A stretch of 64,000 nt of DNA from Carpediemonas membranifera BICM. Lineage: Eukaryota; Protista; Fornicata. Shown piece by piece: positions 10,941-53,219 of the stretch. Where the stretch lies: NCBI GenBank assembly GCA_019828565.1, contig JAHDYR010000002.1, forward strand, positions 1 to 64,000, written 5' to 3'. The notes under the pieces are model-generated. The model searched no databases. It had not been told where the DNA came from and worked only from the letters and a program-made list of their open reading frames with translations. The translations under genes were made by a program, and so were the position numbers. How positions within the stretch are numbered: the first letter of the stretch is position 1; the number at the start of each line of letters is the position of its first letter.

Positions 10941-11038
10941 CAGGAATTTCCCTTATCCAATCAGGGAATTTCCTCGGGGGAAAGCCCGAGGAAATTCCCC
11001 TACCCAATAAGGGAAATTCCTGCACCCTGGACAGTATG
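10941..11038 (-). mobile_element. Right end (type c) of a CATACTGT-family DNA transposon
   Basis: Ends ...GACAGTATG at 11038, identical to the last 9 bp of the TSD-verified end at 41844. Four GGAAWTTCC palindromes centred 23, 45, 70 and 92 bp from the end. Confidence 0.75.
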
Positions 11039-11214
11039 ATGGGAGCACAGAGACAGTAACAACATCAAGAAGACCTCTCGATTTACGAGAGGGGCCGAAA
11101 CGCCGCTGAAGAGGCCGCGGGCCAAGATGTCAGGGAACGAGCGCATGGAGGGTGCCTGAGCTGCAGCTTAGCTTGCTTATTATTGATTTATAAACGGGTC
11201 GAATTCTGAGAACG

Positions 11215-11918
11215 ATGTCGGAAGAAACGATCGTAATCCCCTCGGAGGGTTCTAGCATGTCTCGTCATGACTATGAGCTGCTGTTTGACAAAATACCGGC
11301 AGACTTGAAGGATATTGACTGGAAGCAGGAGGGTAGCTCGTTCCTGGACCGGGACATCACGATAGCGGCCAACGGTGTCTCCAAGAGCGTACAGCTGTAC
11401 ATGACTGATCAGCGCACGCTATATGGAGGCACCGCTGGCAAGGGCATCGCGTCTCGTGCCGAAATCCCTGCGAAGAGCATCATCGGCCTGTACTGCGGCC
11501 GACTGATCGACTTCCAGCCGGATGACCCCACGTACTGCACTCGCGTTGGCACGACGAAGTTCGCTATGGATGCGTCTTCACTGATGGGCAAGCTTGGAGT
11601 CCACACGGTGAACGACTCTGCTGTTTGTAACATGCCTCTCCCCCAATTATTTAGTACCACAATGTCAGTGCTCTTCTGTGCCATGTTTGTGTGGAGGATG
11701 CAGTCTTGCCTGTCATTGTATATGAAGCAAGCGTTGACATTCGTCCGTTTGAGTTCCTCTCGGTCGCCTACGAAGATGACTATTGGGCTGACCCCTTTGT
11801 TTGCCGGCCTCTCGTTGTCGCTGACTTCGAGACACTGCTGACCGACAAAGAGATGACGAAGGAAGGCAAGTTGACCTTGGCATTGCAGTTCTTCGACAAG
11901 GTATCCACGAAGAAATAA
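11215..11918 (+). CDS. SET-domain protein with a 32-nt intron (11623-11654)
   Basis: GKGIASRAEIPAKSIIGLYCG. Splicing GTTTGT..TTTAG gives in-frame NDSAYHN..ASVDIRPFEFLSVAYEDDYW (SET NHS and ELxxxY-like motifs), 223 aa. Confidence 0.75.
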
Positions 11919-12178
11919 ATATCTGTCTGATTGAGTGATAGTCAAGCGCCACGGGTGATACTACGTCCGCCAACCTTACCTTGCCTTTAAGTATGCCAGT
12001 ACAAAGCACTCACGTGTTACCTTACCATGTAAACAGAGAAATGTGGCATTTATCAGTTGAAGCAACGCCCAGCCCACATCAATATGGGCTGTAGGTTACG
12101 TTTCTGCTGTCTCTAGACGCGCAGTGATCTCACTTACCACCGAACATTTCTTTAGAATTTCGTTCTGAAGAAACCGAT

Positions 12179-13109
12179 ATGAGCTCTGGGGCGAAGGATT
12201 CAGCAGGATACGCCAGCATGATGTTTGAAGCGCTACTGAGGATGATTCCGAAGCTGCAGGAGTACATCGCGAGGTACCGTGGTGACGGTGGCGAGATGGA
12301 TCCGGCTATGCTTTTGCAAGCGATCCTACATCGTGTTCCTGATCTTCACCACGCTGATAAGAGACATATACGCGAGCTGTTGGCAGCTCGAAACTCAATC
12401 TGCCACAATCGCGATGTTTCCAGTGCTGCCGATTTTGCATCCTTTGAGATGTCGGTCACATGCGTCATGTCGTTTGTGACGCAGAAGGTGGGCCGTGATG
12501 ACGGCTTCAATGCCTTCATGGAGGCTCTGCACAACGAGGCGAACGGGGGGCCGACCAGGACGCGAGTTCACCCGCAAGCCCCTTCCCGCAGGGACTCCCA
12601 GCCTGTCAGGATAGTCGAGAAGCGGGTTGAGGTACCTGTTTACATGACTGCGCTGGGTCCTGATCCTGATAAGCCGAGGATGGTGGGAAAATGCCAGCAG
12701 TTTTCGCCACAGGGTGAGCATGCAGAGACTCAGACTGTGCGAGACCTAGAGGAGGCGTCTACTCAGACAGAGCTCTTGGTTGAGCCTGTTAGTACCCTGC
12801 GCACGGATGAATTATCTCGACGCGTCGTCAAGACCGCGATGTGCGATCTGCTTCGACAGAAGCTGAAGGAGAAAGCCACCGATCGTATTAGCAGGGTCAT
12901 GCGTTGTGTGCGGTGGGTCCGTGGACGATAGAGAGTGGGCCTGCACGCGACGTGGCACCAAGACGCCGAAGTCTAGCTGCCGAGATTTGTTGAAGCAGGC
13001 CACTGTTGATGCTTCAGCCGCAAGAGCAACAAAGAAGGCGCACGACACACGTAAGGTATATTTGACGGGAAAGGCAGTGGCCTGGCTTAACTCGCAGATG
13101 GAGAAATAA
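12179..13109 (+). CDS. HEPN (Swt1-like) domain protein, probable frameshift near 12925
   Basis: DPAMLL..ELLAARNSICH contains the RxxxxH motif in a helical context. Confidence 0.55.
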
Positions 13110-13141
13110 AAGATTCAGAGTCAATGGATATGTTTACAGCT

Positions 13142-13799
13142 TCAGTCATTCCATCTGTCGTCAGGGGTATCCAGATCGGACAGGGAGATGGGTCTTTTCA
13201 GACTCTGCATCCCCGCTTCGTGCAGGATACGGTTCGCGTGCCTGACTGTCATGGGGGACTACCCCAGAGCGAATCAAGGTCCTTGGACATCCAGATAAGG
13301 GTCTCAAAGGCAGGGTGATCCACGGCAGCCTCTTGCATCAACTCCTGTAGCGCGGGTCTAAGTCACGTAGGTCTGCGACATACGATCCCAGCCGGCAGAG
13401 AGCAACGACTAGGGCGAGCTGACGGTGGGACTCGGCAATGTCGTACTTCAGAGCACCCGTGAGCTTGTCGTACTCTTCCTCAGTCAGCACCTGGCGTGCC
13501 GGAAGCGTGTGAGTCCTTATCCTGCAAATTAGGTCGGTTTCGGCACCAGCAGTGCGAAGAAGGCGAACGAGAGCCTGTTGAGGCATCGAGATGGACTTGT
13601 ACCGTCCAAAACGGCAACAGAAGGACAGAGAGTCCAGAAACTGTTCGAATACGTCACTATTTTGTCGGATCTCTGTGATAATAACAACATCAGCATCCTC
13701 ATCGTCGCACTCAAGGTAAACGCACAGTTTTTGATATGTCTGCTTGTATTGCTCCTTCGTAGAGCGCTTCAGTCCCTCTAGAGCGTGCTTCAGCAGCAT
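13142..13799 (-). CDS. Degenerate tyrosine-recombinase-like protein (frameshifted)
   Basis: STKEQYKQTYQKL (core-binding-like), LTEEEYDKL, ALCRLGSYVADL at the GxRxxEL position, and after frameshifts ANRILHEAG..PISLSDL at the HxLR position. Catalytic residues are absent. Confidence 0.4.
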
Positions 13800-14800
13800 T
13801 TCGATCGAGATTAAAAATCACCCGAATTCTAGCTCTGTTCTGGCCGCTGCAGGCACCGCTGGGCGCGATAGAGCTCGGAGCGGCGTTGTCTGCCAAAAAG
13901 AGCATATTGCTCCCGGTGAAAATTGAACCCACGATCTGGAGGCTGTGTACAAAGTCTCTTCCCTCTATGCCACGACTTATGGGAAATCCGCCCTTATTAA
14001 TCTCCCTACAGGGAATATAGGCCATTTTGGAGGTATGAGCGACCGGGAGGGGGGAGATTGGGGGACATTTATGGTATGGCTGGACTCTACTCGGGCAGAC
14101 TATTATAACGAGGCTCAGACCATACCTCTACGGCCGCTATACGAGGAGAAACGAGCCAGTAAGGGCACTAGCGGCCCATGGCCGCAGCAGCGCCCAGCCA
14201 AACTCAGCTATAGTGTCACCTGAGGCCCCAAATGACGTGCTGATCAGGTCGACTCCCATCTATTGACTTGGTAATTGCAGAGGGCGTCTGAACGCGATGT
14301 CCTAATAACCGACTTGGTCGGAGCGGTTCGGCGATGACTCCGTTGTATTCCACACCTTCTTCTGATGCCGAAACATGCAGTCCTTTATAGTCAACGCGCG
14401 TCCTGTCCGTCAGGCATGAAGGGCATTCAGCAGAGGCATTGCTGCGGTCTGCAGGCCGCCCTAGCGCTTCAGGATGGCCAACTGCATGATCTGGACCCAT
14501 GTCTATCAAATCCATTTTGATCACATCAAACGTGTGTCAAATCCGGCAAATCGATTTTGCGATTAAAAAAGGGGCAGAGGGGAGGAAGCGACCCATAAGG
14601 CGTACCTATGGACCATTTCCTCCCCCCTGCCCGTTTTTTGAGTCTCAACTCTCAATTCCAATTTGTCCCTATGTTACTTTTTTCTAGCAGGATTAAAAGT
14701 TTGATACTGCGCATGCGTATTGCTTAGGTATAGCCAAGTACTACCATACCACTTTGAAGATCCAGCTCCGGCTCATCGTCGAGTTCATTTTTTCTTGCAA
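13762..14800. repeat. ~1.04-kb subterminal segment, inverted copy of 32722-33758; the end-proximal ~280 bp also recur after 52920 and 56863
   Basis: Direct sequence match. ORFs 14216..14524/32997..33305 and 13945..14223/33255..33575 are near-identical. Confidence 0.9.
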
Positions 14801-14803
14801 CCG

Positions 14804-14877
14804 TAGATAATCTAGGTTTTTTAGGCCCTAGATTATCTAGAAAAAATCGTAGATTATCTACCGACTTTCACAGTATG
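14804..14877 (-). mobile_element. Right end (type b) of a CATACTGT-family DNA transposon, abutting gag of element D
   Basis: Ends ...CACAGTATG at 14877. Three TAGATWATCTA palindromes centred 23, 44 and 69 bp from the end. Confidence 0.8.
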
Positions 14878-16970
14878 GAGGCGCACGAGGCGCGTGACAG
14901 ATGGGCTAAGGAAGGTTGCAAGGGGAGGTAGTTGGAGATTGAGGGCTCTCGCTTGAACTTGGTAGTGATCGACGTCGTCCTGGAAGGTGAAGAAGGCAGA
15001 ACGCGTAAGCGATCGCAAATACGGGATGGTGATGCCAAAAGACTGCATGTAGTATCGATACTGTGCTTGGTTTGGCCTTGAAGGGAACTTTCCAATTAAT
15101 GGATGAGAACTGATTTACTCCTGGAAACCGCAGTGGTGAAAATGGTCAAAAACCAAAACCTTAAACTGCGCCTCTGTGACGGGCAGGGGACAGGAACACC
15201 GAAGGGAAACGATGAACTAACTTTAAATTGACTTTGACGATCATTGACCAATCATAAAAAGAACTGATTGGGACAGCTAACACAACGTGACACTGCCTCC
15301 ATGAGTGGGCATAGGCCGTCTATGTTCGTAGGGGGTTCAATTGGGGTCGCCATTCGGCCCCTCATCAATTGATTCAGAAGGATGGTGGTGAACTCGCATG
15401 GTGGAAAATCTGTCCGGATACACGCAAAATCATACAACGAACCGCTAAGTAACTAATCAACATCATTATTCTTGAACGGCGTCGTGTTCCGCATCATTCT
15501 CAACGCAAAGCACACAATACAAGAGCCGCACTTGCAAATCTGCGGTTTCTGCCTCCGCAATGAGAGATGTGGAGTATTATTAAGTAGATGACGACAACTA
15601 GAGAGCTTTACGGGCGCTCTTCATCTTCTTGAGCAATTGGGGATGCTCAGCAAGATAGTCGTCAAGGGCAGCGAGCTTGTCGAGGTCTCGGGTATAAGGC
15701 TCCCAAGTTGCCTCACTATCGTCGTAGCCGTGCCAGAGCACGTGGAATTGGAGGTTCCTCTGCCTCCAGCGGTGGGCGTCAACTCCTCGGACGACATACT
15801 CGTTGTGCAGGCGGGCGGCCCATCGTTGCAGCTCAGCATCTGTATATGACCCCTTAAACGTATAAAGAGAGTCTGCGTGCGCTGTGACGGTTGCAAGAGT
15901 TGTCAGGTCCCTGAGGGTGTAGACGTTAGGGTGGTCGCCAGGTGAGAGGACTCGCATAGGGCCTCGGATGATAGGGCCAACGGGCGTGTCTCGCCGGAGT
16001 AGAACCGCTGCGCCAACGATTGGTGCGTGCGTCTCCGAAGGGGGCTCACGTGACACTGCTGATCCTTGGTGGGCCTGAAGGGCGAGGAGGGATGAGCGGA
16101 AGTGCTCGAGGGAAATAGGGGAGTCATCGGTCGCGTTGTTGGTCGTGTGGAGCTGCTTGCCGAAGAGAGCAGCGTTGGCTGAAAAGGCCGCTGTACTCAT
16201 AGGGGATGTCGTTGAGCAGAATCACTGTGTTGGGGACTTCCTCAGGCCAGCTCCTGCCTGATTCAAGGGTAAAAGCCTTCAAATGGCGCTTGATCTCGGC
16301 GTTGCGTCTTTTCAACTACACCACGGCCTGCCGGGTGATAAGCTGTACGGAGTTTATGCCTAATGCCATTCTCGGCCACGAATGACTTGAATGCCTGGGA
16401 AGAGAATCCGGATGCGTTGTCAGAGACGATAGCTTCGGGTATTCCATAGTGTTTGATCCAGTGTTCTAAAGAGTTGATGACCTCTGCTGTCGAGGTCGAC
16501 TGTGTCGGGTACACTTGGGTGAGCTTAGAGAATGTGTCAACTACGACTAGTGCGTGCCGGAGTGAGGGGTGACCATCTAGCGGACCAATGTGGTCCATTT
16601 GTACCACTTGGAAGGGGTATGCCCCAGCCAATGCATGCGGGTGCTGGCTGACGGGTTGAACGTTCAGACGGGTGAGCTGACAGACTGGGCACTCACTTAC
16701 CCATTGTTGGACGTCTTTGTGGAGACCCGGCCAAGATTGTCCCGCATTCGCGATGCGTCGGCAGGTGGCGCGAACACCGAGGTGTCCTGCTGAACCGCCA
16801 TGGTGTGCCTTGAACGTCTCGCGCTTGTTGAGCGATGCTTCTGCAGTGCTCACATGGACTAGGCGAGATAGCGTGTCAGCGACGGTGTTCTCTTGACCAG
16901 GGATATGGACGAGGTCGAAGTCGAACTCATTCATCGCCAGCGAATGACTTTGGCGTTGGTGGATTTGTGG
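14878..16970 (-). mobile_element. Ty3/gypsy family D fragment: RNase H end, integrase, chromodomain, PPT, LTR (15062-15292), palindrome (15052-15061) and gag start (15048)
   Basis: HH..CPVC, MDHIGPL, SDNASGF, and chromodomain FHVLWHGYDDSEATWEP. PPT GGAGGCAG then TGTCAC..GCACA, then GTATCGATAC and ATG of MQSFGITIP. Confidence 0.85.
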
Positions 16971-18047
16971 GCAAATAAGAACCAGTCTGCAGCACTCATC
17001 CGGATCTTGAAGTGCCACGAAAGTGCCACTATCCGACGATCCCATCGCAAAGGCAATGGCCGAAAACGGGGCAGAGACAAACGTCGACATCATGGAAGTC
17101 ACAGTTGTTTGGCCATTCGAGGCCAACACAACATAAGACGCGTTCATGGCGAAGCTACAGGCACCAGTAGGAATGGAGAGACTCTGGAAGGTGCATGTTT
17201 CCTTGCCTGCGAGATTGAACGCGGTCCTGAGGCATCTAGGTGGATCGCCAGCATAAAGCAACCTAGAAACAGAGTGAATCACATTACACTTGTCTGACGA
17301 GAAGATGAGACGGTTAATCTCGACGTCAGATGGCATGAACTCTGTCAATGAGGCATTACTCCCAACTCCGAGCTGCCCATGAGTGTTATCACCAGCAATC
17401 CACTGCTTTGCTTTGATGCGAAAGACAACAAAACGATCAAATGCGTCAATTGCCGTCGGATTCAGCGAGTGAATGCAGCTGAAGCTAGCGTAATCACAGT
17501 GACTAGTCCTCCAAAACCATGTGCCCGAGACAAATATGCCTTCACTACAGCTCAAGAGCACATACTTTCTCAGCAGCTGTAGACAGGTGATGTTGACGAA
17601 CTTCCATGGCGGATAGTTACGGCAAACCTCACTGACAGAATGGAAGAACCTGACTCGATGGCAATGGTAATACGAGTCAATCCAGGTTAACCCTCCAGCT
17701 GTGATCCCGTAGCACCTCATCTCATCGTAGTAAAACTGAGGGAAGAAATGGCCGGCGACTCTAAGTTTGAGCGTGTCTCGCTTCGCGAAACAAACCCCCC
17801 GAAAGTACAAGAGAGTACCGCCGTAACAAGGGTGTTGTGCTGTCTCTCTCTTGGTGGTATGAAACTGGAGGAAGAACATCTTGCAGGCAAACCACCAGGG
17901 GCTCTCATCACCAACACCCGCCTCCATAAATATTGCCCAGACTGTCGCTTGAAGAAGCGTAAAAAGCGTGTGGGGCAAATGGGCATCTGCATCCGGGTAG
18001 TTGATCGTAAATGACGCATGCTCTGATCGGAGCATAATCTCTATGCG
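15687..18047. repeat. 2.36-kb direct duplication of 41845-44203; 14880-15688 likewise matches 31838-32645
   Basis: Near-identical sequence and shared ORF translations. Confidence 0.95.
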
Positions 18048-21000
18048 GTTGGTTCGCTCTTTCCACCATCCCATTGGCCTGAGGATGGTACGCGGTGGTG
18101 ATATGCTGCTGGAACCCCACCTCTTGCGATAGTCGTCGGAATAGGCCATTGTGAAACTCAGATCCGCCGTCTGACTGGAGTACTTGCGGCGCTCCATATC
18201 TTAGGACCCAGGTATTGATAAAGGCCTCGGCTGCTTCTTTTCCGGAGTTGCTCTTGGCAGGGACTAATTCAGTCCAGCGAGAGCACATATCTACCATGAC
18301 GGTAATATACGAGTACCCGTCACAGGACGGCAAAGGACCCATCGTGTCGATTGCCACGCGTTGTAGTGGGGTGTCAACAGCTGTGTGGAGACCGTCGGGT
18401 TGGTCGACCGGCGGCCGATCGAGGACTTGGCAGATCGGACAGTCGGATACGACCCTATCAACTGCATCGCGTGAGACTGACAGTCCTTGGCCACGGAGGC
18501 GCTCGATCGTAAGACGTCTCGACAGGTGGACGTCGGCGAACAAGTGAGCTTGGTGAATCTGTTCGGTCGTTGCTGTCTTCTTGGCCATGGCAAACACCCT
18601 AGACAAACCGTCAGCGGCACCGTTATCGAGACCGGGAACGTGGGAGATAGTGAAATCGAGATCGGCGATAGAATCGGCCCAGCGCCTGACCTTAGCGTTG
18701 ATCGACTTATACATATAGAGCAAGTTACGGTGGTCGGTCTTGATCTCGAAGCGCTCCCAGCACAAGAACTTGCGCCAGGCCTGGAGCGCGGACACAATGG
18801 CGTACGCCTCTTTTCACCAACACTCCACCGCGACTGTACATTATTAAATGCCTTCGATAGATAGCAGACGGGCTTGCCGTCTTGGAGGAGAACCGCTCCG
18901 TATCCCACGGCGGAAGCGTCAGTCATAACAACGTGTGGACGCGTGGCGTCGAAGATCGCGAGTGCATCCGCGGAGCAGAGGGCGGCTTTCGCGTCTTCTA
19001 GTGCTTTGGAGACGTCAGCGCTTGTAGAACTCGTCTTACCGGACATTGCATCCGTTATAGGCTTGACTCGCTCGGCGAAGAAAGGGATATGATCGCGGAA
19101 GTAGTTCAGGAACCCGTGAAGGGCCTGGAACCCTCTTGTGGACTTCGGGACTTTCAACTGTGCTATATCTTCAACACGCTGAGGCGAAATGCGAACCGTA
19201 CCATTGTGGATGATCCACCCCAAGAATTCAACTTCGGCACAGTCGAACTGGCACTTATCCCGACCCAGGTGGAGTCTCATCTTTTCGACTCGGGCCATCA
19301 CTCGCTCTAGGTTATCCAGATACTCTGCCTCAGAGTCTCCCATTACAATAATGTCATCAATATAGATAATGCAGGAAGCTCCGACCAGACCCTCGAACGC
19401 AGTCTCCATCGCGCGCTGGAAATAAGCCCCAGCGTTCCGCAGGCCAAACGGCATGCGAGTGTACTGATACTGTCCGAAGACAGTTCGGAAGGCCGTTAGG
19501 TGGCGACAACGCTCGGTTAGCGCGATTTGGTGGTAACCTGCTGCAAGGTCAAGAGTGGCGAAGATCCTCTTGCGACTCAATTGTGCCAAGATCTCGTCAA
19601 TGCGAGGAATCGGATAGTCAAACGGCTCGGTCAAGGAGTTAATTTCCCGGAAATTGACCACGAACCGCGTCTTCTCACCCTTCTTGGGGACAACGATCGT
19701 CGGGCTAGAATACTCAGACTGACAGGCCTCTATGAAGCCTTTTGCAAGCAAGGTGTCAACGTGCTCCTTAACGATGGGGACCTTAGGAGGAGGCACAAAG
19801 TATGGACGGACGTTCACGACCTTGTTTCCCTTGATCACCAGGTCGTAGGGGTCTAGTAGGCTAGGCGCATCACGCTCTTTGAAGTTGGAGGCGTATCGTC
19901 GAAGTATAGACGACTGTCGGTCGCGTGCCTCTTGGGACAGCTCGGACATGGCTTGTGCGATGTATTTCGTGGCCGGTGGGGTCTCACTAGAGTCCTCAGT
20001 CGGGTCGGAGGAGCTGGGAATGGCGCTTGGCAAGAGTCCGAGACTTACCATCTGAGGAAATCCGATGATGATGTCGAACGCAGTGTCTATCACGTAGGCG
20101 CGCGAATTTTGAATCCGAAACAGAATGAACACACCGACGCTGATTTACTCCCTTCTTGGTAGGGCAGTAATCGGCCAGGTGTCCTGACTTGTGGCACTTA
20201 GGGCAGAATGCCTTCGGCTCAGCGCACTTGAAAGACGGATGCCCGGGCTTACCGCAGTTGTAGCACACGTACTGCTTCTTGGGCTTGTTCTGACGGTTGG
20301 GCTTCACTATGGGCTTCGAACCTTGGCGTTCGTGGCGCTCCGAGGGATCTTGGTGGTCACTGCGTGGCTCGCGCTCGTGAACATGTGGAGCTCTGGGACG
20401 GGCAGCAGCGGGGGAGAAGGAGTTCACCATCTCTTGCGACTCCTGTTGGTCGCGTGACATTGCCATGACTTTCGGCATGATCGAGGGGATGTCGAGGCCT
20501 TCTGCGAGCTCCTTGACCTTGTACATGATCGTGTTGGATCCTTGCACGCGGAAGCATCTGCAGTACGTCTCTTTGAGCACATCCTCAGGTACATCTGGAT
20601 TGACTAACAGCTGGAGCGCCTTGAACTTCCGATTGACGTTATTGACCTCGACGGGGTCGAAGGTCTTGGCGCGTAGACGGAAAAGATCGAGCTGAGCGGT
20701 GGATCTGCTGGGACGCAGTACGCTGCCTAGGCGCTTGAGGATTCGTAGATCGCTGAAGTTGCGCTTTTGACGGCGGCGCTCGGTAGTTGCCATCAGTAAC
20801 GGTACGTAATCATCGTCTTCGGAGTTACCGGCCTCGTCGATGCATTGCGAGACATAGTCAGCGATAGATGGATCGACGAGTTCGGAGATATCGGCCTTAC
20901 CGCCGAGGGAACGGTACGTTTGGAGGTGAAGGTAAAAATCAAGCAACGCCTTCATTGAAGGGTCGCGGAATAGCGGGGGAACCGCTTTTTCTTTGTTCTT

Positions 21001-21155: not shown

Positions 21156-23247
21156 GGCCGGCGGCTCGAGGGAGCGCAGGCGGAGGCGCTGGATAGACTG
21201 GTAAGCTTCAACTTGTGTATGAAACTTGAAGAACTCGGTCGCGATAGTGTCGAAGAGGTCGCCGTCGGGGATATCGTCGATAGGGACGCGGAGGCGTGTT
21301 GGTTCATCAATAGATTATTTAATAGTCTTGAGTCGTCCAGCTCGACACATGGGTGTCGAGCTCTATTCTTTGTAAAGCTTTGTTCTCACGAACCCACAGT
21401 AACGTTACTTACAATGACTGAGGACAAGGGTCCGTTATGTACTCAACCAGAGATTAATGCTCTGCTTTCGTTTAAGGAGAAACTCGATCGCCATGTCCGA
21501 ACGGGCGGAAAACGCCGACTTATCAAGCGTTTGGGTCCGGCTGTCACCTCATACTGTGCAGCAGTTGGTGTAGACGTAGCCAAGACGTACAAGAGCGCGA
21601 AGCACAACACAGTGACGGGCGAGAAGCGTAAGAAACATGAGAGAGAGGACCTCGTTTTCAGAGCGATTGCTAACGCAATTAAGCCCACTGATCCGATCCT
21701 AGAGCGCCGTCTTTTCCAGCTAACGACCCAGGGTATTGACGTGGGACGTCTCTCACTCTATGCCGACAGATTCATCAGCCGCAAGGCCGTCTTGGCTCCC
21801 TCTTTCTCCGACGCCGTGATGCGCAGCATGTTCGTGAAGGGAATCCAGGACGAGGACCTCCGTAGGGAGGTCAAGGAGGCGGCTACAGGGCTTGACCTTA
21901 ACAGCACCATCCAGGTCGCTCTCCAGACGTGCAAGCGTCTCCAAGAGGCTGCGATGATTACTTCCAGGACCATCAAGTCCGATTCTCAGCCTCGAAACCG
22001 CCCTCCTAAGGACCAGCGCGCAAGCCATTCTCGAGGTCTGCGCCGACAGGGCGGCCCGCCTCACCCGGGTGAGCACCAGTCTCATGGCAAGCACCAGTAC
22101 CGGGGAGCCCAGTCTGAAATGCAGAGAAGTCAGCAGACCGGCTCAAGCACCGATCATCAGAGCACCAGCCGTACCATCGTGTGCTACAACTGCGGCAAGT
22201 CCGGTCACACATCGCGCCAGTGTCGGAACCCGAAGACTGTCTGCAGCAAGTGCGGTAAGCAGGGACATCAAGACAAGTTCTGTCGGGGTACTTCAGTAAA
22301 CCCCCAGGCTTGTTCATCCTTTTCTCGTGCACCCGCTCATGTCCTGACATCGTTGAGTCAGACACACAGCAACGCGCTCCCGATAGTAACAGCAGAGGTT
22401 CCGGTCGGTAATGATCACAGTGTGCAATGGGAGCGTGTACTTTTCGACTGCGGGGCGGATATTTGCTTGGTGAACCCCCAGTCGGCAACCGCTGCTGAAC
22501 TTATTCCGACGAAGCTCAGTCAACCTATCGTCATCAAGACTCCAGGGGGATCTATTGAGTCCGACGTTTGCTATGAGATTCCCCTTCTCATGCATAAGTC
22601 ACCTTTCACTCCAAAGGCACTGTCGACTACTGTCGCCGCATACGGAGTTGAATGCATCTACGACCTTCTATTGTCGTACCCAACGATGGTTGAGTGGGGC
22701 ATCCTGCCCAGTGTCGCGGAATCTCAAGCGAGCCGGGACTCTGACGATATGGAACCGTCCGTCCCCCCAATGGACGCGATGCAGTCCTACACTATGTCAA
22801 CAGATTTTACAGCGATGCATGCGCGAATCATCGCCAAGTTCAGCCGTTGCTTCGAGGAGCGTGAGGGGTTTTCTGCCTTAGAGCCTTATGACCTGATCTT
22901 GAAGGAGGACCGAGTAGTAGCGTCCAGGTCAAATTACATCCCTCACCAGAAGCAGGGTCTGTTTGATGAGCACGTCCGGGAGCTGTTAGCCAAGAAGTAT
23001 ATTGAGGCGAGTTTCTCTCCGTACTCGTCTCCAGCTCTCCTCGTCCCGAAGGGCCGAGACAGAACTCGTATGGTTGTCGATTTCAGAAGGATCAACGACC
23101 TGACTGAGCCGTTTGATTACCCGATCCCAGAGGTTCAAGCGTGCCTCGCACGGTTGGCAGGAGCTAAGATCTTCGCCACGATTGACCTTTCGAAGGGTTA
23201 TCATCAAGTCAAGTTGTCCGAAATGTCGAGACAATACACTGCGTTCC

Positions 23248-28344: not shown

Positions 28345-28401
28345 TGAGAGCCAGTGCAGTTTATGTAAACAGATCTACCTGCGCAAGCCAACAATGGCAC
28401 A
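28345..28401 (+). mobile_element. 57-bp solo-LTR-like insertion
   Basis: TG..CA ends with TSD CATT. Also present at ~53633-53689. Empty site at ~57570. Confidence 0.8.
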
Positions 28402-34257: not shown

Positions 34258-34488
34258 TGAGGGCGCCAGGAATGAGGCGCCAGGGATGAGGGCGCCAGAG
34301 ATGAGGCGCCAGGGATGAGGCGCCAGGATGAGGGCGCCAGAGATGAGGCGCCAGAGATGAGGCGCCAGGACGAGGGCGCCAGGACGAGGGCGCCAGGATG
34401 AGGCGCCAGAGATGAGGCGCCAGGATGAGGGCGCCAGGATGAGGGCGCCAGAGATGAGGCGCCAGGATGAGGGCGCCAGAGATGAGGA
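34258..34488. repeat. Tandem repeat of a 13-15 bp unit GGCGCCAG(A)GATGA(G), about 16 copies
   Basis: Direct reading. Confidence 0.95.
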
Positions 34489-34499
34489 GTACAGTATTA

Positions 34500-34845
34500 G
34501 AACCCCGAAAACGCCATAATACCAACACCAATGAGCTTCATCAACGAAGATATGCTCACTGGTGCCGGTTATGGCGTTTTCGGGGTTCGTCGATCATTCT
34601 GCTCCCAAATCTGCACCTGAATTTTCGTGAGCATGCCCGGGAGCTATGCCTGACGAGTGATACCGCAGGGACCACGCTCAGATGCTCAGCCTCTGCCAGG
34701 CGGCACTCGTTTGAATTCTGCACGAAAAAAAATCAGACGACGAATGATGGGCAAAGGGCCGCGAAAACGCTGTAGTACCAGCGCAAGTAGAGTATTTTGC
34801 AATAAAATAGCTTACTTGCGGTGGTGCTGGCGTTTTCGGGGCCCC
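34500..34845. repeat. Two related inverted repeats
   Basis: Perfect 20-bp arms at 34500-34519/34569-34588, and an imperfect related pair at ~34756-34845. Both contain CGAAAACGC. Confidence 0.85.
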
Positions 34846-34850
34846 AATAT

Positions 34851-35075
34851 CCTCTCTCCCCCGTGCTCTCCCCCGTGCTCTCTCCCGGACGTTCCCCCGG
34901 GCTCTCTTCTCCCGTGCTCTCTCCCCCGTGCTCTCTCCCGGACGTTCCCCCGTGCTCTCCCCCGTGCTCTCTCCCGGACGTTCCCCCGGGCTCTCTTCTC
35001 CCGTGCTCTCTCCCCCGTGCTCTCTCCCGGACGTTCCCCCGGGCTCTCTCCCCCGTGCTCTCTCCCGGACGTTCC
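34851..35075. repeat. Pyrimidine-rich compound tandem repeat (CTCTCCCCCGTG / CTCTCTCCCGGACGTTCCCCC)
   Basis: Direct reading. Confidence 0.95.
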
Positions 35076-35106
35076 AGAAGAGACAATGGCTATTTCTGGA
35101 ATCCAA

Positions 35107-35362
35107 TGGACAGTTGGTGGCAGTATTGATGTTGTTTATGCAATTAAAGTTCCTATCGTTTCTTCTAGCTCGTTCCTTGTGTGGTTTCGTGGTTCCTTTG
35201 ACTCGTTTGATGTTGTTAATGAGTATCATGGGCCATAGCGGCCGTCAGACGCTATTGATGTGTTATTATGCAAGCTTATATCCTCAATAAAGCTCTATAG
35301 CTCATTGGCACTGAGAAAATAGTGGGAAGTCGGTTCCCACTATTGGTGCACTTTATGGCTCG
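35107..35362. repeat. ~256-bp direct repeat, second copy at 39837-40092
   Basis: Near-identical sequence. Confidence 0.9.
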
Positions 35363-35502
35363 ATCTCAATCCGCTGGTCTCCGACAGGCAAGAGAGCGAG
35401 ACAGGAATAAATGAATGTATATCTGACTGTCTGGTCAGCTGCGCCAAGTCGATGGCTTAGTCAGTGTTTGAGTCATTCCCACGACATATTTACTTCGTTC
35501 AT

Positions 35503-36890
35503 TTACTTCTGATGCTTTTCCTGCTCTCTCTTCTCCATCAGGTCGTCATACTCGGCCCTCGTCAGCCTCACAGTTGTCATCCCGGCATCACGGATGTGCT
35601 CAAAGGCCTCAACGGGCAGCTTCGGCATCCCGTCCTCGCTGTCGCTGCTGCTGCCCAAGTCTGACTCGCTCTCGTGATAGCGGCGAAGGCGAATGCGTCT
35701 GCTGGGCACCCTGGTCTTCATAGAGTCATAGAGCGGAGCGAGCCCACTTCCATTGGCCCCGCTACGGACACCCTCATCGGTATCTCTCTCAGACATGTCA
35801 CACTCAACCTGTTGTGACAGAACAAATGACAGGTTATCGACGAGGCTATCCTCGGCATCGCTGTCTGAACTCTCCTCATCCTCCCACTCTCCTTCCAGCA
35901 TCTCCAACCCGGCCTCATCGTCAAACTCGCCCTCCACTGCGGTCTCCGGCATCTCTGCCTCGCCAGCTGTCTCGTCAAACAGCGCCTCATCGTCAGACTC
36001 ACCCTCCCCCGTGTCGCCCCCCTCGGGCTTACGCTGATCGTGGAGCTGGACCATCCTAATCCTGAGCTTGTTGTAAAGCCAGTCATCGAGCGTCGGCGGC
36101 ACCAGGTCAGCAGAGCTTCGGATCTCCGGGTTGAGATCGAGGATCGTTGGGCGCCGCGTGGTCGTTAAGTGACTGGACGCCAACTGATGCCTGAACTGCT
36201 CATCGGTCAGGCTGATGCGCTTGTCCTTAATGACCTTACGAACCTTGATCGGATCCCTGGGCCTGCCAGTCCGTCTTTGTGTCTCAATCACCCGCTTCTT
36301 GAGCTGATTGAGATCGACATGCACAGTGGGCGCATAGCGAAGCTGGTTAACACTCAGCCCGACCGACTTGAGAGCCTGCGAGAAGGTGCTAGGCATCACA
36401 GCGGACATCGCAGATGGTGCCCCGGTGAATAGCAACCAGTCAGAGAGTTCCGGGGGAATCTGGAGCTCGCTCCATCAATATCGCGGGCTGATGTGGCAGT
36501 CATGCCCGTGTGGCTGATGATAAGAGCCAGCGCATTGTAGGGGAAGACTAGTCGGACAATAGCTTCCGATGCGACAGGCTCAAACTGCCCAAGCGGCTTG
36601 ACATTGTCTCTGCCGGAGTTTCGGAATGAGTTGACGGCACTGAGAGTGACAGCAGCGGTTGCCTTGTTCAGTGATGCAGCAAAACCGGGCACAAGCGATC
36701 TAACCTCCTCGGATCGGATCACGGAGAGCGCTTCATCCTCGGTACTCCCTCGCTCACGTTGTAAGAATTGAACGAACCGCGAAAGGTTGTTTGCAGCCGC
36801 TTTCCGGGAAGATTTCTTCTTAATCTTGTTCAACCAAGCTTCTTTCATAGCTTCCATGGTTGTTTCCATCTCCTGCGGGCTTCCTTCCAT
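35503..36890 (-). CDS. Degenerate tyrosine-recombinase-like N-region plus long acidic tail (frameshift near 36440)
   Basis: ORFs 36396..36890 and 35503..36435: SRKAAANNLSRFVQFL, ALIISHTGMTATSARDI, FSQALKSVGLSVNQLRY. Confidence 0.45.
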
Positions 36891-36891
36891 C

Positions 36892-37221
36892 GATATACGG
36901 ATTTCAGACTTTCGTCATGCACAAAAATTCGAATCTCTCCAAATGCCCAAAACAGTGGTCAAACCGTGTTCAGGGGTACAATAGAGTGCCATAGGCACGT
37001 TCTTGCATTCAAAATATTCTAGAGGTCGTTCATAAATTCTCAGATGGCCAACAGTACGAAAGTCTGAAATCCATTTATCATGAGACCCGACAAATTTGAA
37101 ATCCATTTATCGGGTGGATACATCACTGTAGAGGGTATTCATGGATATAGGTGCCTTTTTCGGTGCCGAGGGGAGTCAACATTTGAGGTCGTGCAGGCAG
37201 AAAGTCTGAAATCCGTATATC
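36892..37221. mobile_element. 330-bp MITE-like foldback
   Basis: Perfect 22-bp inverted termini GATATACGGATTTCAGACTTTC (possible TA TSD inside) and an internal partial copy at 37057. Confidence 0.6.
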
Positions 37222-38005
37222 TCATCACTGCTTATAGATCCTGGCAGACAACGGCCTCTTGGCAACGCCTGAGGTGTAAGGATTCGCTTGCCTCTGTGTT
37301 GTCGCATCAGCTTCGCTGAAAACGGGGGAACTGACCCGCGCATTCGCGCACTTTATGCTCGCAACGAGATTGAAATGGCGAACTTAAGAATAGAAAGAAT
37401 ACTGGCGGCTTTAACGTAGTAGGCATGTACACAACACTAAGAAACATCAGTTGGCGGGCGCAGAGCATCACTAAAGCAACAATAATCCCTAAACAACATC
37501 AATCATCATAAGTCCATCAGGACCATACGATATGAACAATAAATGAACCACAGAGCAGTATAGATGATTTGAGAGTACCAGGCATGGCCAGAATACCGCA
37601 ATTATCGTCCGTTGATCCACGTGACCTCCATCTTGGTCGGTATCCAGAGAACGCCCGTCAGACGCTTGCAACGGAACATTTAGGGGGTGCATCCTGAATG
37701 GGGCCAGATTTGAGGGACCCTTGGTCTGACATGCCATGACCGAGTACTCTAGGGGCCTCCACAGTGCGTCCCGAGGTACGTTATAGCACCACAGACTTGG
37801 TGTGTCTTAGCCTGCACCGCCCGAAAGCTCGCCGGATCACTCCCCATACGTTATATCGCCATTCAGTCCACATAATGGGTGTTTTCGGAGCGATTATATC
37901 CCCCGTTTGTATGGTATAACGTTTCCGACACCCCGTTGCCTACGGTTACTGGCAATTTTCTCATCTCTGTTATATGTCCATTATTGGGATATAACGAAGA
38001 GAAGA

Positions 38006-39764
38006 ATGACGTTCGAATTCCTTCACGAGTGGATCGAGAGCACCTCAGATGATGTGATTGAGGCCGTTATCACCGAATTCAAGGAGAAGAAGACAAACAA
38101 GGCGAAGAGTGCCGTTCTTCGGGACAAATTGCTCGACGAGAACGATATCTTCGATATAGTCGTCAAGAACGGTACGTAATTGGTGCAAATGTTTATATAG
38201 GGATCAACTTCAACCACCTGTGCTCATATTTCGAGATTCAGGGCGAGAAGAAGGCAGAACTCGAGGCATTGCTGTCTCAGCAGGTGCAGGATAAGACCTC
38301 GAACGAGATCATCGAGGCAACCTTCACGGAGAAGGAGATGAAGGCGTTTGAGTCGGCCGCTGTCACAGCCTTCAAGAACTCCAAGAGGGCTGAGTATGCC
38401 AAGGAGAATGAGGGCGCGCGTATCGAAAAAGAGGCGCTGAGTGTCAAGGTTCGGGCGTGGCGCAACGCGACATCCACCAACGCGCTTGTGCGCGACCATG
38501 TCACAGCAATGGTTGCCAGGGTGCGCAGCAAGGAGGCAGACCTTGCTTACATGAAGCACTCCTGCCGCTCGTACTTCGAAGAGTACATCATCGCCCTGGA
38601 ATGGTTGGAGACCCCCGCGGGAGAAGGTACGCCCCTGCTCCCCCCAGGTACTGGCGCTATCATCGATTACTATCACAAAATTGTTCGAGGATACAAGAAG
38701 AGAGTCAAGCAGTTGAGGAAGAGCTTGACGGCAAAGAGTGAGGAAGTCATCACGCTGCATCGACGCCTTCTGCAGCAGCAGGCTGAGCGAGAGGCAGCCT
38801 ATGACGCTGACAAGTCCATAGATGCATCACTCCCATGCAGCCCCATCCCGCCACAGTCTGGCACAGTCTCCAGGACTTCCTGTCCCCGACGCGATACGGA
38901 CGAGCCCGAGGCCTCCATGTCTGTGAAGCGCAAGGCCCTCATCATCACGCCCGAGAAGGCCAGGCCAGAGGACTCGGAGGAGGAGTCAGAGGAGGAGGAG
39001 ATAGAGGAGGAGGTGACTGTTGAGAAGAAGGGTGAGTCAGATGAGGAGGACGTGACCAAATGCGACGCCTGTATCCAGACTGAGCCCGAGAAGGCCAGAC
39101 CTGTGACCTGCGAGACTGGAACTGAGATGAACGAAGGTGACGACCGTACCCCGACAGATGACAAGGATGTCCAGACCGAGGAGAGAGAGGACTGCCTGGA
39201 CGAGTTCACACGTCACCTCCGGTCGAAGTTCAAGCCGTACAACCCCCAGGCGATGGTGACTGTGTTGGCCACTGCCTCAGGCATGTGTCGAACGAGCGTG
39301 ACGTACCGACAACAGATTGGCGTAAGCAGCTTCAAGCTGCTGCAGGGATTATGCAGAAGCGCGACCTACTTCCGGCAGACTATCAGCTCTTTTACAGCCA
39401 TGCCAGTTCAACAGGCAAGGGTGGCAAGAACGACAGTCTTCCATACTGCCGGGACACCGCAATTCAGGTCTGGTCACAGATTCACAACGTGCCCATTGCA
39501 TCCATCCAGGACGGCACAATCGTCTTCTTCCAGGGTAGAGACAAGGGTTACATCACCCTGACAAACACTAATGCGAGCATGTCCGTCATCCGTGTCATTG
39601 CAAACGTGATTGGCGTCAATGACTACATTTATATCTCCGGCACGCCAACTGACGTCACAGCACACGCGGAAGTGTACCATGCAACACCTGTTGAGCTGAG
39701 GAAGGCAGAATCGCACCTGTCTGCCCAACAGAACACAGAGGATGACTGTTATTTTGTGGAATGA
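38006..39764 (+). CDS. Hypothetical helical/acidic cargo protein with a 29-nt intron (38172-38200) and a frameshift near 39290
   Basis: Splicing GTACGT..TATAG joins MTFEFLHEW..VVKNG in frame to ORF 38269..39561. ORF 39285..39764 continues it. Confidence 0.6.
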
Positions 39765-41755
39765 GTCAGTAGTAAATGAATGAATTGCGGTGGCGTCGTG
39801 GTGCTGCCGTGGTGCTGTTGGCTTTGGGGCGCTGACTGGACAGCTGGTGGCAGTATTGATGTTGTTTATGCAATTAAAGTTCCTATCGTTTCTTCTAGCT
39901 CGTTCCTTGTGTGGTTTCGTGGTTCCTTTGACTCGTTTGATGTTGTTATTGAGTATCATGGGCCATAGCGGCCGTCAGACGCTATTGATGTGTTATTATG
40001 CAAGCTTATATCCTCAATAAAGCTCTATAGCTCATTGGCACTGAGAAAATAGTGGGAAGTCGGTTCCCACTATTGGTGCACTTTATGGCTCGCAACGAGA
40101 TTGAATGACGAACTCCGTCATCCGTGTCATTGCAAAAAGGTGATTAGCGTCAGTGACTACATTTATCTCCAACTCATCTACAAATGCAAATATCGAGTGT
40201 CTCCACCCCATCATCTCTGCAATCTCTGCAAAGACTGCCATGAGAACTACTCTGCAATTGCGGGAATCAAACTGAGTAAAACTGACTTGTGCTTGTGTTT
40301 TGGCGTGTCTTCGGTTGGGCTGTTGACTGACAGTGTTTATCGGCTGCTACAGGTTTCTCTCTATTTACAGATCTATTCACATCGAAAACTCGTTGTAATT
40401 TGCTATGTAGTATGAACAAAATGTCTTGATCCTTGCCGTGCAGCGCTTCATCTGCTCTAATTCACCATCAATGCGAGAATCAATGAAGTGCGCTCGTTGA
40501 ATCCCATAAACAACGTCTAGCTCCAATTCTATCCCTTCAATCGTTAATGCTATACGTTTCGCCGGCGATACCGGCGTCGCTCGTGTGTTTTCTTCATCGG
40601 GCGTCATCTGAAATGCGCAGTTTATGCGGAGCCTGGTTGGCTGTATAAAAGAGGTCCAGATGTGTATCTATCCCTGTATTGACTATCGTGCGTGGAAGAG
40701 CGGCGAGCTTCTGGAATCAACGGGGCGAATCTGCCCTGTGTATTCCGGCAGCGCACGGCCCTGCCACACACGTCCTAACTCGTCATTAAGGTCGTTAGTG
40801 ACCCTACAAACACTCATACGCGCATCATCCTACCTTTCATTAACGAGATTGGCTCTCGCGCCGCCCCAAATGGCCGTATGAACCAGGCGCTTGCCGGTCG
40901 CAACCTTTCGTCATCAATAGAACTCTATGCTCGCCACTTCACTGTTCCAGCAGGGTTATATTGCCAATGGGGACGTTTCAGATGTCTGAGCGAGCGATAA
41001 TGAGTAAAAGCCGACTTGATATTGATTAGTTGTGGGAAAAGAGGCTTATGCCATCTAGAATGAGCGAAAGCATGCTCAGATGGGCAAATATCTCGAATGC
41101 TGTCTTGCTATGAGCTCTATCACAGTCATTTCTGGATATCTCCGACATTGCTTCCGTCATTACCATTTTTTTTTCATGCAGGCGGCGTGACCTTAAACTG
41201 AACAATAACAATAACTCCCCCAATTGGAAGAGTTCACACCTGAAACCATTATGCCTGAGGTTTCAGCCAAGGGCGAGTACATTGCCGTCTTTTTAATTCC
41301 AATAACTTTAACTTTTTTCTTCGCGTTGACCGCCCAAGAATGTTCTCCTTACACGACGGTCTGGGCATCATCGTGTAGTAATACTTGTGTTTACTCGGCC
41401 TCTTGGTTTTTAGTTGCAGCGTAGAAAAATTCCCTGAGCTGTGCGCTCATCAATAACGCCTCTCGACTCGGCCCGAGTCTTTTGCTAAAAATCTCGAGAT
41501 CTGTTCTGTCCCCTTCGCAGATTTTTGTTGGATCACAAGCACTACTGGTGTAGATCAGATCCTGCAAAAAAACTGCGAAGGGGACAGAGCCAAAGTGGTC
41601 GAACTTGAAAAAAATGGCTCTCGTCGTCAAGAAGAAGTCACCCATACTCAGGTCACAGCTTAGCCCACAGTTAGCCATCAATGCAGTGAATAGAGAACTA
41701 GTACTGCTACCCAGCCATACCATTCTTATTTACTGACAGAGCCTGGTTCCTCTGA

Positions 41756-44491
41756 TTAATTCAAACGTCTTGACTTAAAGTCAAGTTTTGGCCTTGACTT
41801 TAAGTCACAAAAACTTGACTTGAAGTCAAGGAATTGACAGTATGCTCGGGTATAAGGCTCCCAAGTTGCCTCACTATCGTCGTAGCCGTGCCAGAGCACG
41901 TGGAATTGGAGGTTCCTCTGCCTCCAGCGGTGGGCGTCAACTCCTCGGACGACATACTCGTTGTGCAGGCGGGCGGCCCATCGTTGCAGCTCAGCATCTG
42001 TATATGACCCCTTAAACGTATAAAGAGAGTCTGCGTGCGCTGTGACGGTTGCAAGAGTTGTCAGGTCCCTGAGGGTGTAGACGTTAGGGTGGTCGCCAGG
42101 TGAGAGGACTCGCATAGGGCCTCGGATGATAGGGCCAACGGGCGTGTCTCGCCGGAGTAGAACCGCTGCGCCAACGATTGGTGCGTGCGTCTCCGAAGGG
42201 GGCTCACGTGACACTGCTGATCCTTGGTGGGCCTGAAGGGCGAGGAGGGATGAGCGGAAGTGCTCGAGGGAAATAGGGGAGTCATCGGTCGCGTTGTTGG
42301 TCGTGTGGAGCTGCTTGCCGAAGAGAGCAGCGTTGGCTGAAAGGCCGCTGTACTCATAGGGGATGTCGTTGAGCAGAATCACTGTGTTGGGGACTTCCTC
42401 AGGCCAGCTCCTGCCTGATTCAAGGGTAAAAGCCTTCAAATGGCGCTTGATCTCGGCGTTGCGTCTTTCAACTACACCACGGCCTGCCGGGTGATAAGCT
42501 GTACGGAGTTTATGCCTAATGCCATTCTCGGCCACGAATGACTTGAATGCCTGGGAAGAGAATCCGGATGCGTTGTCAGAGACGATAGCTTCGGGTATTC
42601 CATAGTGTTTGATCCAGTGTTCTAAAGAGTTGATGACCTCTGCTGTCGAGGTCGACTGTGTCGGGTACACTTGGGTGAGCTTAGAGAATGTGTCAACTAC
42701 GACTAGTGCGTGCCGGAGTGAGGGGTGACCATCTAGCGGACCAATGTGGTCCATTTGTACCACTTGGAAGGGGTATGCCCCAGCCAATGCATGCGGGTGC
42801 TGGCCGACGGGTTGAACGTTCAGACGGGTGAGCTGACAGACTGGGCACTCACTTACCCATTGTTGGACGTCTTTGTGGAGACCCGGCCAAGATTGTCCCG
42901 CATTCGCGATGCGTCGGCAGGTGGCGCGAACACCGAGGTGTCCTGCTGAACCGCCATGGTGTGCCTTGAACGTCTCGCGCTTGTTGAGCGATGCTTCTGC
43001 AGTGCTCACATGGACTAGGCGAGATAGCGTGTCAGCGACGGTGTTCTCTTGACCAGGGATATGGACGAGGTCGAAGTCGAACTCATTCATCGCCAGCGAA
43101 TGACTTTGGCGTTGGTGGATTTGTGGGCAAATAAGAACCAGTCTGCAGCACTCATCCGGATCTTGAAGTGCCACGAAAGTGCCACTATCCGACGATCCCA
43201 TCGCAAAGGCAATGGCCGAAAACGGGGCAGAGACAAACGTCGACATCATGGAAGTCACAGTTGTTTGGCCATTCGAGGCCAACACAACATAAGACGCGTT
43301 CATGGCGAAGCTACAGGCACCAGTAGGAATGGAGAGACTCTGGAAGGTGCATGTTTCCTTGCCTGCGAGATTGAACGCGGTCCTGAGGCATCTAGGTGGA
43401 TCGCCAGCATAAAGCAACCTAGAAACAGAGTGAATCACATTACACTTGTCTGACGAGAAGATGAGACGGTTAATCTCGACGTCAGATGGCATGAACTCTG
43501 TCAATGAGGCATTACTCCCAACTCCAAGCTGCCCATGAGTGTTATCACCAGCAATCCACTGCTTTGCTTTGATGCGAAAGACAACAAAACGATCAAATGC
43601 GTCAATTGCCGTCGGATTCAGCGAGTGAATGCAGCTGAAGCTAGCGTAATCACAGTGACTAGTCCTCCAAAACCATGTGCCCGAGACAAATATGCCTTCA
43701 CTACAGCTCAAGAGCACATACTTTCTCAGCAGCTGTAGACAGGTGATGTTGACGAACTTCCATGGCGGATAGTTACGGTAAACCTCACTGACAGAATGGA
43801 AGAACCTGACTCGATGGCAATGGTAATACGAGTCAATCCAGGTTAACCCTCCAGCTGTGATCCCGTAGCACCTCATCTCATCGTAGTAAAACTGAGGGAA
43901 GAAATGGCCGGCGACTCTAAGTTTGAGCGTGTCTCGCTTCGCGAAACAAACCCCCCGAAAGTACAAGAGAGTACCGCCGTAACAAGGGTGTTGTGCTGTC
44001 TCTCTCTTGGTGGTATGAAACTGGAGGAAGAACATCTTGCAGGCAAACCACCAGGGGCTCTCATCACCAACACCCGCCTCCATAAATATTGCCCAGACTG
44101 TCGCTTGAAGAAGCGTAAAAAGCGTGTGGGGCAAATGGGCATCTGCATCCGGGTAGTTGATCGTAAATGACGCATGCTCTGATCGGAGCATAATCTCTAT
44201 GCGTCCAAGCAGCTTGTGACCGCGATCGTCTGCGTGCGAGTCGTCCAGGAATTCTCGCATGAACCACCGAAGGTACTTGTGAAGTTCTGCTACGTCCTGG
44301 ATGAGAACCTGTTTGGGCGGCAGTGTCTCGGGCTCAGCACCAACCTGAGAGACGTATGCGAGCCGGAACATATTCGCGATGCCACCAGCGTAGTTCTCGC
44401 AAAGCGCATCAGCAGACCAATACATCAGGCAAAGCATCTGCTTTACCTCATTAGTCTTATGGACGTCCTGGAGCGTGAGATATGACGTCAT
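41756..44491 (-). CDS. Module 2 beta-propeller gene fused in frame to gypsy D integrase-chromodomain, cut by the TIR element at 41844
   Basis: 911-aa ORF: RCC1-type WIAGDNTHGQLGVG, junction near 43130, then HIPGQENTVADTLSR, integrase and chromodomain. Confidence 0.8.
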   Translation of the reverse strand: MTSYLTLQDVHKTNEVKQMLCLMYWSADALCENYAGGIANMFRLAYVSQVGAEPETLPPKQVLIQDVAELHKYLRWFMREFLDDSHADDRGHKLLGRIEIMLRSEHASFTINYPDADAHLPHTLFTLLQATVWAIFMEAGVGDESPWWFACKMFFLQFHTTKRETAQHPCYGGTLLYFRGVCFAKRDTLKLRVAGHFFPQFYYDEMRCYGITAGGLTWIDSYYHCHRVRFFHSVSEVYRNYPPWKFVNITCLQLLRKYVLLSCSEGIFVSGTWFWRTSHCDYASFSCIHSLNPTAIDAFDRFVVFRIKAKQWIAGDNTHGQLGVGSNASLTEFMPSDVEINRLIFSSDKCNVIHSVSRLLYAGDPPRCLRTAFNLAGKETCTFQSLSIPTGACSFAMNASYVVLASNGQTTVTSMMSTFVSAPFSAIAFAMGSSDSGTFVALQDPDECCRLVLICPQIHQRQSHSLAMNEFDFDLVHIPGQENTVADTLSRLVHVSTAEASLNKRETFKAHHGGSAGHLGVRATCRRIANAGQSWPGLHKDVQQWVSECPVCQLTRLNVQPVGQHPHALAGAYPFQVVQMDHIGPLDGHPSLRHALVVVDTFSKLTQVYPTQSTSTAEVINSLEHWIKHYGIPEAIVSDNASGFSSQAFKSFVAENGIRHKLRTAYHPAGRGVVERRNAEIKRHLKAFTLESGRSWPEEVPNTVILLNDIPYEYSGLSANAALFGKQLHTTNNATDDSPISLEHFRSSLLALQAHQGSAVSREPPSETHAPIVGAAVLLRRDTPVGPIIRGPMRVLSPGDHPNVYTLRDLTTLATVTAHADSLYTFKGSYTDAELQRWAARLHNEYVVRGVDAHRWRQRNLQFHVLWHGYDDSEATWEPYTRAYCQFLDFKSSFCDLKSRPKLDFKSRRLN

Positions 44492-53200: not shown

Positions 53201-53219
53201 GTCTTAGATTACTCAATAT

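Follow-up and report, generated by a model that had tools for sequence, protein, structure and literature searches.

Transposon ends in the Carpediemonas window

The window described here is a stretch of 64,000 nt from a Carpediemonas membranifera contig, in which long terminal repeat (LTR) retrotransposons and DNA transposons are nested in one another. Several of the DNA transposon ends have a common tip, CATACTGT, behind which lie short palindromic boxes (dyads) whose sequence differs between subfamilies. All seven matches to CATACTGT in the window were read; six are the ends reported in the initial annotation, each present with its dyad centres exactly where they had been placed, and the seventh, at 21550, lies within a gag-pol open reading frame (ORF), has no boxes and was ruled out as a transposon end.

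Type a ends carry dyads of the form TGACTT-N-AAGTCA, centred 23, 44 and 68 bp from the tip. The left terminal inverted repeat (TIR) of 74 bp (32646-32719, forward strand) consists of CATACTGT and boxes at 32662-32674, 32683-32695 and 32707-32719, and the right TIR (41771-41844, reverse strand; boxes at 41816-41828, 41795-41807 and 41771-41783) is identical to it at 73 of 74 positions. Together they bound a complete but non-autonomous 9.2 kb element (32644-41846) with no transposase match inside, whose 2 bp target site duplication (TSD), CT, is proven by the presence of the empty site at 15687-15688. Two minisatellites lie within the element (34244-34487 and 34852-35075), and in one type a copy the first of these forms an in-frame fusion with a truncated transposase (P0005). 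A truncated type a left end with about 355 bp of body is present at 52847-53200 (forward strand) and again at 56790-57143 (forward strand), within a tandem segmental duplication that includes the flanks (50714-53632 and 54659-57575, 99.9% identity); these two ends are a single insertion that has been duplicated and are therefore not independent observations.

The left TIR of a type b1 element (14804-14877, reverse strand) has TAGAT-W-ATCTA dyads at 14850-14860, 14829-14839 and 14804-14814, centred at 23, 44 and 69, and the right end of a type c element (10943-11038, reverse strand) has GGAA-W-TTCC dyads at 11012-11020, 10990-10998, 10965-10973 and 10943-10951, centred at 23, 45, 70 and 92. The type c boxes are slightly asymmetric, boxes 3 and 4 mirror boxes 1 and 2 about position 57.5, and the type c left end has two boxes only. 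A box spacing of about two helical turns had been proposed, which describes the first interval (21-22 bp) but not the second, of 24-25 bp. By chance, a dyad with arms of at least 4 bp is centred at 22.5-23.5 for 2.1% of random positions. A further end at 50598-50647 (reverse strand), overlooked in the initial annotation, belongs to subfamily f and is a counter-example to the rule of a dyad at 23: it has direct boxes at 30 and 41 and no dyad at 23. Its tip is CGTACTGT, and that of the contig-1 copies that were checked is CATACTGT.

Pairing of ends and conservation of the boxes

In the 24.24-Mb, 69-contig assembly, to which all genome-wide counts refer, type a ends number at least 32, type b ends at least 83 and type c ends at least 22, and reversed control patterns gave no matches genome-wide, compared with 83 for type b and 22 for type c. 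Type b comprises two subfamilies, b1 and b2, which have the box in common and differ in their spacers. Convergent ends lie 9-30 kb apart and pair within their own type, and the palindromes, which had been called interchangeable, are not so within an element, where left and right boxes always match. Short motif searches that included the two flanking bases at paired ends gave a 2 bp TSD for 8/9 type a pairs, 10/10 b2 pairs, 4/6 b1 pairs and 2/7 type c pairs (P = 0.07 for type c); no target-site preference is evident among 50 flanks. It had been left in question whether types b and c have partner ends and TSDs elsewhere; both have partners and type b has TSDs, with type c TSDs found at two of the seven pairs. 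Flank dinucleotides recur where type c TSDs are mismatched, which may reflect recombination between copies. The a, b and c ends are the termini of large (9-27 kb) cut-and-paste transposons of C. membranifera.

Among individual elements, one b2 element is nested in another (C24:165525-192436), each with its own 2 bp TSD. Pairs of b1 ends inverted at 112-753 bp (C13:68039-68781, C56:71615-72367 and C55:47266-47377) are possibly foldback products rather than miniature inverted-repeat transposable elements. The end at L079:1448 was ruled out as a normal b2 right end and is a chimera, and asymmetric CATACTGT/CGTACTGT ends were ruled out for subfamily e, which has CATACTGT at both ends.

The b1 and b2 ends are related in a manner that separates the boxes from their surroundings. 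Identity between them is 90% for the boxes, 44% and 27% for the first two spacers, and 100% for the body from position 75; because the boxes are conserved and the spacers have diverged, selection is at work on the box and its position. Spacer length is identical in all 83 b ends, with 5-16 permitted in the search. The left ends of a, b1 and b2 have a common body of up to 1 kb (94-99% identity) that begins at the inner edge of box 3, and in the window the 1 kb subterminal body at 13762-14800 (reverse strand) matches the one that follows the type a left TIR (32722-33758) at 97% identity. The type c left body is an 82% homologue. There are also mosaics, in which an a end sits on a b1 body and b2 ends sit on an a body. 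The simplest reading is that recombination among copies homogenises the cargo up to the TIR, which would have to stay matched to its own transposase.

A dyad at 22.5-23.5 is present in 6/10 end families, against the 2.1% background, and in 3/7 held-out families that the initial annotation had not used (P = 3e-4). The dyad-bearing held-out families lie on distant branches of the transposase tree, and the relatives L091, L092 and L097 derive from two assemblies other than C. membranifera. The L091 and L097 ends, each a single end assigned by motif and position, have CATGCTGT tips and dyads at 23 (GAGTA-G-TACTC and ATGGC-CTA-GCCAT, respectively), with the motif occurring again 23 bp inward. L092 (GCA_002919055.1, L092:2171-13799) is a complete 11.6 kb element with CATACTGC ends, a 2 bp TSD and dyads at 22.5, 50.5 and 71.5. 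The proposal that the position of the first box is kept while its sequence changes thus extends to other organisms. Regularity of the palindromes genome-wide is a more divided matter: box 1 near 23 is kept in a, b, c, L091, L092 and L097 but not in e, e2, f or L100; box 2 lies at 44-46 (50.5 once), and the place of box 3 varies (61-72). In type d the dyad near 24 is imperfect and those at 46 and 61 are perfect, and subfamilies e, e2 and f have a second layout of direct boxes starting at 30 and 41, whose sequences differ between subfamilies. Box 1 at 23 is a conserved feature of one large group and is not universal. The L093, L098 and L099 contigs break off within a TIR, before the tip is reached; the part present has two ACC-TAC-GGT dyads at a distance of 22 bp.

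Could the palindromes be by-products of inherited local duplications or of hairpin repair, with a geometry that reflects common descent and no functional constraint? Types a, b and c do form one clade (support 94/91), and copies within one subfamily are not independent. However, the box sequences are unrelated and yet their position is kept, the spacers decay around conserved boxes, and distant branches in other organisms retain the centre at 23; we regard such an origin as very improbable.

The transposase and candidate readers of the boxes

The genome contains about 150 matches to a DDE-type ORF of 850-880 aa; they are annotated as hypothetical proteins only and fall into at least ten classes that are 25-60% identical. 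In the window, the type c transposase (7499-10069, forward strand) is split over several frames, and in other type c copies the frame is open over 837-862 aa. An intact 873 aa transposase of a further, single-copy class is encoded by the ORF at 46136-48757 (forward strand), and was ruled out as the transposase of the end at 50647, since f ends sit with another class. Relatives number 18 proteins among 1.84 billion representatives, from C. membranifera, GCA_002919055.1 and an ENA metagenome; a scan of metagenome contigs found no relative and a profile search with A3 found no further members. There is no match in Pfam (16 members searched) or among PDB sequences.

Structural comparison is more revealing. 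An AlphaFold model of the b2 enzyme (pLDDT 83.5) has RAG1 as its best match (Foldseek E 2.6e-8; VIA Z 12.9, rmsd 6.2, 450 residues aligned), followed by Z score by BbRAGL (12.0), the P element (11.7) and HzTransib (9.7), in PDB match lists that lack EnSpm/Mirage-type enzymes and whose ranking does not separate RAG-like from CMC-like. Atlas neighbours include unnamed cnidarian, DUF1280, Transposase_21 and RAG1 clusters, of which Transposase_21 is a weak match (TM 0.29). The predicted catalytic residues of the b2 enzyme (D352, D431 and E709/710) are conserved. The C(2)C motif after the second D is replaced by GGxYPxPF with at most one Cys, and in place of the H(3-4)H motif before the catalytic E there is one His in some members and none in others; as neither motif is conserved, we have not filed the family under any named superfamily. 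Residues 128-754 of the model align to RAG1 479-1029, and residues 1-127 occupy the position of the nonamer-binding domain (NBD). The initial analogy with recombination signal sequences (RSS) is strengthened by this RAG1-type fold and by an additional, variable domain at the N-terminus, in the place that the NBD takes up in RAG1. Residues 1-110 lie ahead of a long coiled-coil helix, and the N-terminal region is 24-29% identical between a and b (core 43-53%) and 46% identical between b1 and b2, which have the same box.

In a hand count from coordinates, each transposase class keeps a constant distance to a single end type (a, 3/3 at 2.8 kb; b1, 13/15 at 2.4 kb; c, 10/11 at 2.2 kb; d, 3/3 at 2.5 kb; the distance is 1.8 kb in e and 2.0 kb in e2), and no class was seen beside a foreign end. 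A correlation of palindrome type with transposase or accessory-gene variants had been anticipated, and it is found for transposase class and for a PHD-finger partner gene, but not for the cargo body or the recombinase-like accessory genes. Of the latter, YRb (13338-13799, reverse strand) is a tyrosine-recombinase core-binding-like ORF with copies (95-100% identical) near a, b1, b2 and d ends, at a distance of about 1.1 kb, and YRa (35503-36890, reverse strand), which lacks the box I arginine, has copies (88-100% identical) within elements of types a and b1 and close to other classes. That such catalytically dead proteins bind the palindromes as dimers is a further candidate explanation: YRb scores 0.98 against phage-integrase core-binding clusters, whose domains bind inverted repeats, and a similar gene is present in L092. 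However, YRa and YRb cross end types at 88-100% identity and one of the two is deleted from several b2 bodies, which argues against them as box readers; this explanation, already disfavoured, is improbable.

The explanation that we favour, with moderate confidence, is that these are ends of large DDE transposons that move by cut and paste, have a core of the RAG1/Transib/CMC type and form a lineage not described before, in which a variable domain reads the boxes. In this scenario the conserved catalytic core would engage the constant tip C-A-T-R-C-T-G-Y, perhaps with hairpin chemistry, and leave the 2 bp target duplication, and a variable, subfamily-specific part of the transposase would bind the dyads with two-fold symmetry. 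How far the protein reaches from its active site would set the first box at about bp 23, and further boxes roughly two turns apart may bring in additional protomers or stabilise synapsis. The boxes and the surface that binds them would diverge together, so that a transposase moves the ends of its own subfamily only, and recombination would exchange the cargo body immediately internal to the TIR among subfamilies; the box code is probably a lock-and-key that stops subfamilies from moving each other. That the transposase, by whichever domain, is the reader we think likely, and we place the reader in its N-terminus, most likely the first 110 residues, with somewhat less assurance. A bolder formulation, which we offer tentatively and consider doubtful, is that this is a separate RAG1-fold superfamily whose ends form a positional code read by a re-programmable N-terminal dyad reader, which stays at a set distance from the active site, giving at least ten mutually orthogonal transposase/end pairs within one genome that draw on a common cargo pool.

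Several observations weigh against the favoured explanation. There is no dyad at 23 in e and e2 (about 100 ends) or in f (at least 30 ends), nor in L100, which fits neither layout, and type c TSDs are found for 2/7 pairs. A b2 end is at the expected 3.4 kb for 3/14 b2 transposases, the others having no detectable right end. The N-terminus is not singled out by its divergence, as residues 111-205 and 206-300 diverge about as much; a fold search with residues 1-175 gave generic helices only and no match to the RAG1 NBD, and an Atlas feature search with residues 1-115 gave no match. Lastly, every element examined has a PHD partner, the class of which is specific to the end type.

Two other assignments of the reader were weighed. 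One is a different domain of the transposase, either a ferredoxin/RRM-like insert (206-300), whose fold derives from structural comparison, or a C-terminal tail with C-x-C. Both vary between subfamilies as much as the N-terminus, and the piggyBac cysteine-rich domain (CRD) dimer and the RAGL C-terminal tail (CTT) provide precedents. The tail lacks the RAGL CCGHC motif, however, and in the annotated b1 protein it is truncated or frameshifted such that its conservation cannot be judged. We consider this assignment unlikely, and slightly more so than the second, in which the N-terminal part of the PHD partner reads the boxes and bridges the ends and the transposase in the manner of CACTA TnpA, leaving the transposase to read the tip only. 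The TnpA/TnpD division of labour is established in En/Spm and is a precedent for such an arrangement. The partner gene, present in the window in a type c element (4501-5674, forward strand, two frames) and again at 44958-46141 (reverse strand, two frames), is often head-to-head with the transposase, as in L091, in type a and at 44958-46141, where the transposase is that at 46136. Its position varies, however, being at the opposite end in e, e2 and L092; no DNA-binding domain is recognised in it, and the PHD pair suggests histone reading. The strict distance from tip to box is also more simply explained by one polypeptide, as in the favoured explanation, and we consider the PHD partner an unlikely reader.

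Upstream of this PHD/transposase module, CATACTGA at 44763 is followed by a 12 bp palindrome centred at 24.5; a matching partner end or TSD was looked for and not found. Directly behind the 873 aa transposase is a 333 aa ORF (48770-49771) that by eye is IS630/Tc1-type DDE-like.

Known systems, cargo and neighbouring sequences

The principle of a constant tip and a binding box at a fixed distance is already known from RSS/Transib and piggyBac. In RSS and Transib ends the second motif is fixed in sequence and distance (PMC1131882), RAGL ends are recognised through the NBD or CTT (PMC10462144), and in piggyBac a CRD dimer of the transposase sits on a palindrome at bp 17-33 (PMC7351741). RAG1/RSS and RAGL (ProtoRAG) are the best structural match and have a constant CA.. 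tip with a second element at a fixed distance, the 12-RSS nonamer being centred at bp 24, close to box 1 at bp 23. They differ from the Carpediemonas family in a third tip base of C rather than T, in zinc ligands that are altered here, and in one conserved asymmetric nonamer in place of repeated dyads that differ by subfamily. The ends here are symmetric and lack the 12/23 rule of RSS, and the TSD is 2 bp rather than the 5 bp of RAGL. Neither the RAGL NBD nor its CCGHC tail was matched, in the N-terminal model and the transposase alignment, respectively. RAGL carries a convergent RAG2-like gene (kelch propeller and PHD); here the PHD partner and a 555 aa neighbour of the type c transposase are present. 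Transib has the same fold family and a heptamer-like tip with a second motif at a fixed distance (PMC1131882), but its CACAATG-like heptamer and A-rich nonamer are conserved across families, in contrast to the CATACTG tip and unrelated dyads here, and its elements are 3-4 kb with one gene and usually a 5 bp TSD, rather than 9-27 kb with cargo.

The CMCT clade (EnSpm/CACTA, Mirage, Chapaev, Plavaka, ESTA and Lanisha; PMC12730594) resembles the family in its CA..TG termini (here CATACTGT, CATGCTGT and CATACTGC), in a TSD within 2-5 bp (2 bp in a, b1, b2 and L092), in a DDE RNase H core of RAG1/Transib type and the order and spacing of its DDE residues, in accessory genes and cargo, and through the DUF1280 and Transposase_21 Atlas neighbours. 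It is unlike it in the C(2)C and H(3-4)H motifs and in the lack of a Pfam match in 16 proteins, including to the Transposase_21 domain of EnSpm/CACTA. An EnSpm/CACTA accessory protein binds subterminal repeats; here the recombinase-like genes are excluded from such a role by segregation, and the PHD partner co-segregates. The closest functional precedent is piggyBac, in which a dimer of a transposase domain binds an internal repeat, palindromic and near bp 17-33, whose distance from the tip is fixed. It belongs to another superfamily, however, targets TTAA, has asymmetric ends and is not described in that work as a set of co-resident subfamilies with swapped boxes (PMC7351741).

What is new here is an unclassified RAG1-fold lineage in which the boxes keep their position across organisms while their sequence has been replaced on six or more occasions, and in which one genome houses several such 'locks' that share cargo. 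A search of the literature on Carpediemonas and transposons found no description of the family, and no word that starts with 'transpos' occurs in the main text of the genome paper (PMC8516963). These elements supply RAG1-fold transposases in a natural series: the sequence that is recognised at the ends has been replaced several times, and the geometry of its recognition has stayed the same. The series bears on how recognition in the heptamer-spacer-nonamer style evolves and on how co-resident subfamilies avoid cross-mobilisation, both of which can be tested by domain and box swaps; should the positional-code reading be true, it would be a natural model for the evolution of RSS-like recognition by tip, spacer and box. 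As the elements carry 9-27 kb, orthogonal large-cargo transposases could also be useful tools.

The 555 aa gene (5849-7516) belongs to a large host gene family and was captured by c elements, in which it is head-to-head with the transposase. It is found at high identity with c elements only and has no PDB sequence match, and is more probably host-family cargo than a RAG2-like gene. A SET-domain-like cargo gene is present in the b1 element in two frames (11215-11918), with SET-like genes also in L092 and L094, and a weak HEPN Swt1-like ORF (12179-12931, E 0.006) in the b body has 98-99% identical copies in b2 elements. L092 encodes the transposase, OTU-like and caspase-like protease motifs (identified by eye), and recombinase-like, SET and PHD genes.

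Elsewhere in the window, the N-terminal part of a host family is fused in frame to a retroelement integrase at 41756-44491 and 16263-18197, with a chromodomain added in the former; the two copies of the region are 99.8% identical. A repeat of about 102 bp, LTR-like with TG..CA termini and an internal palindrome, is present at 21297-21398 and 31736-31837.

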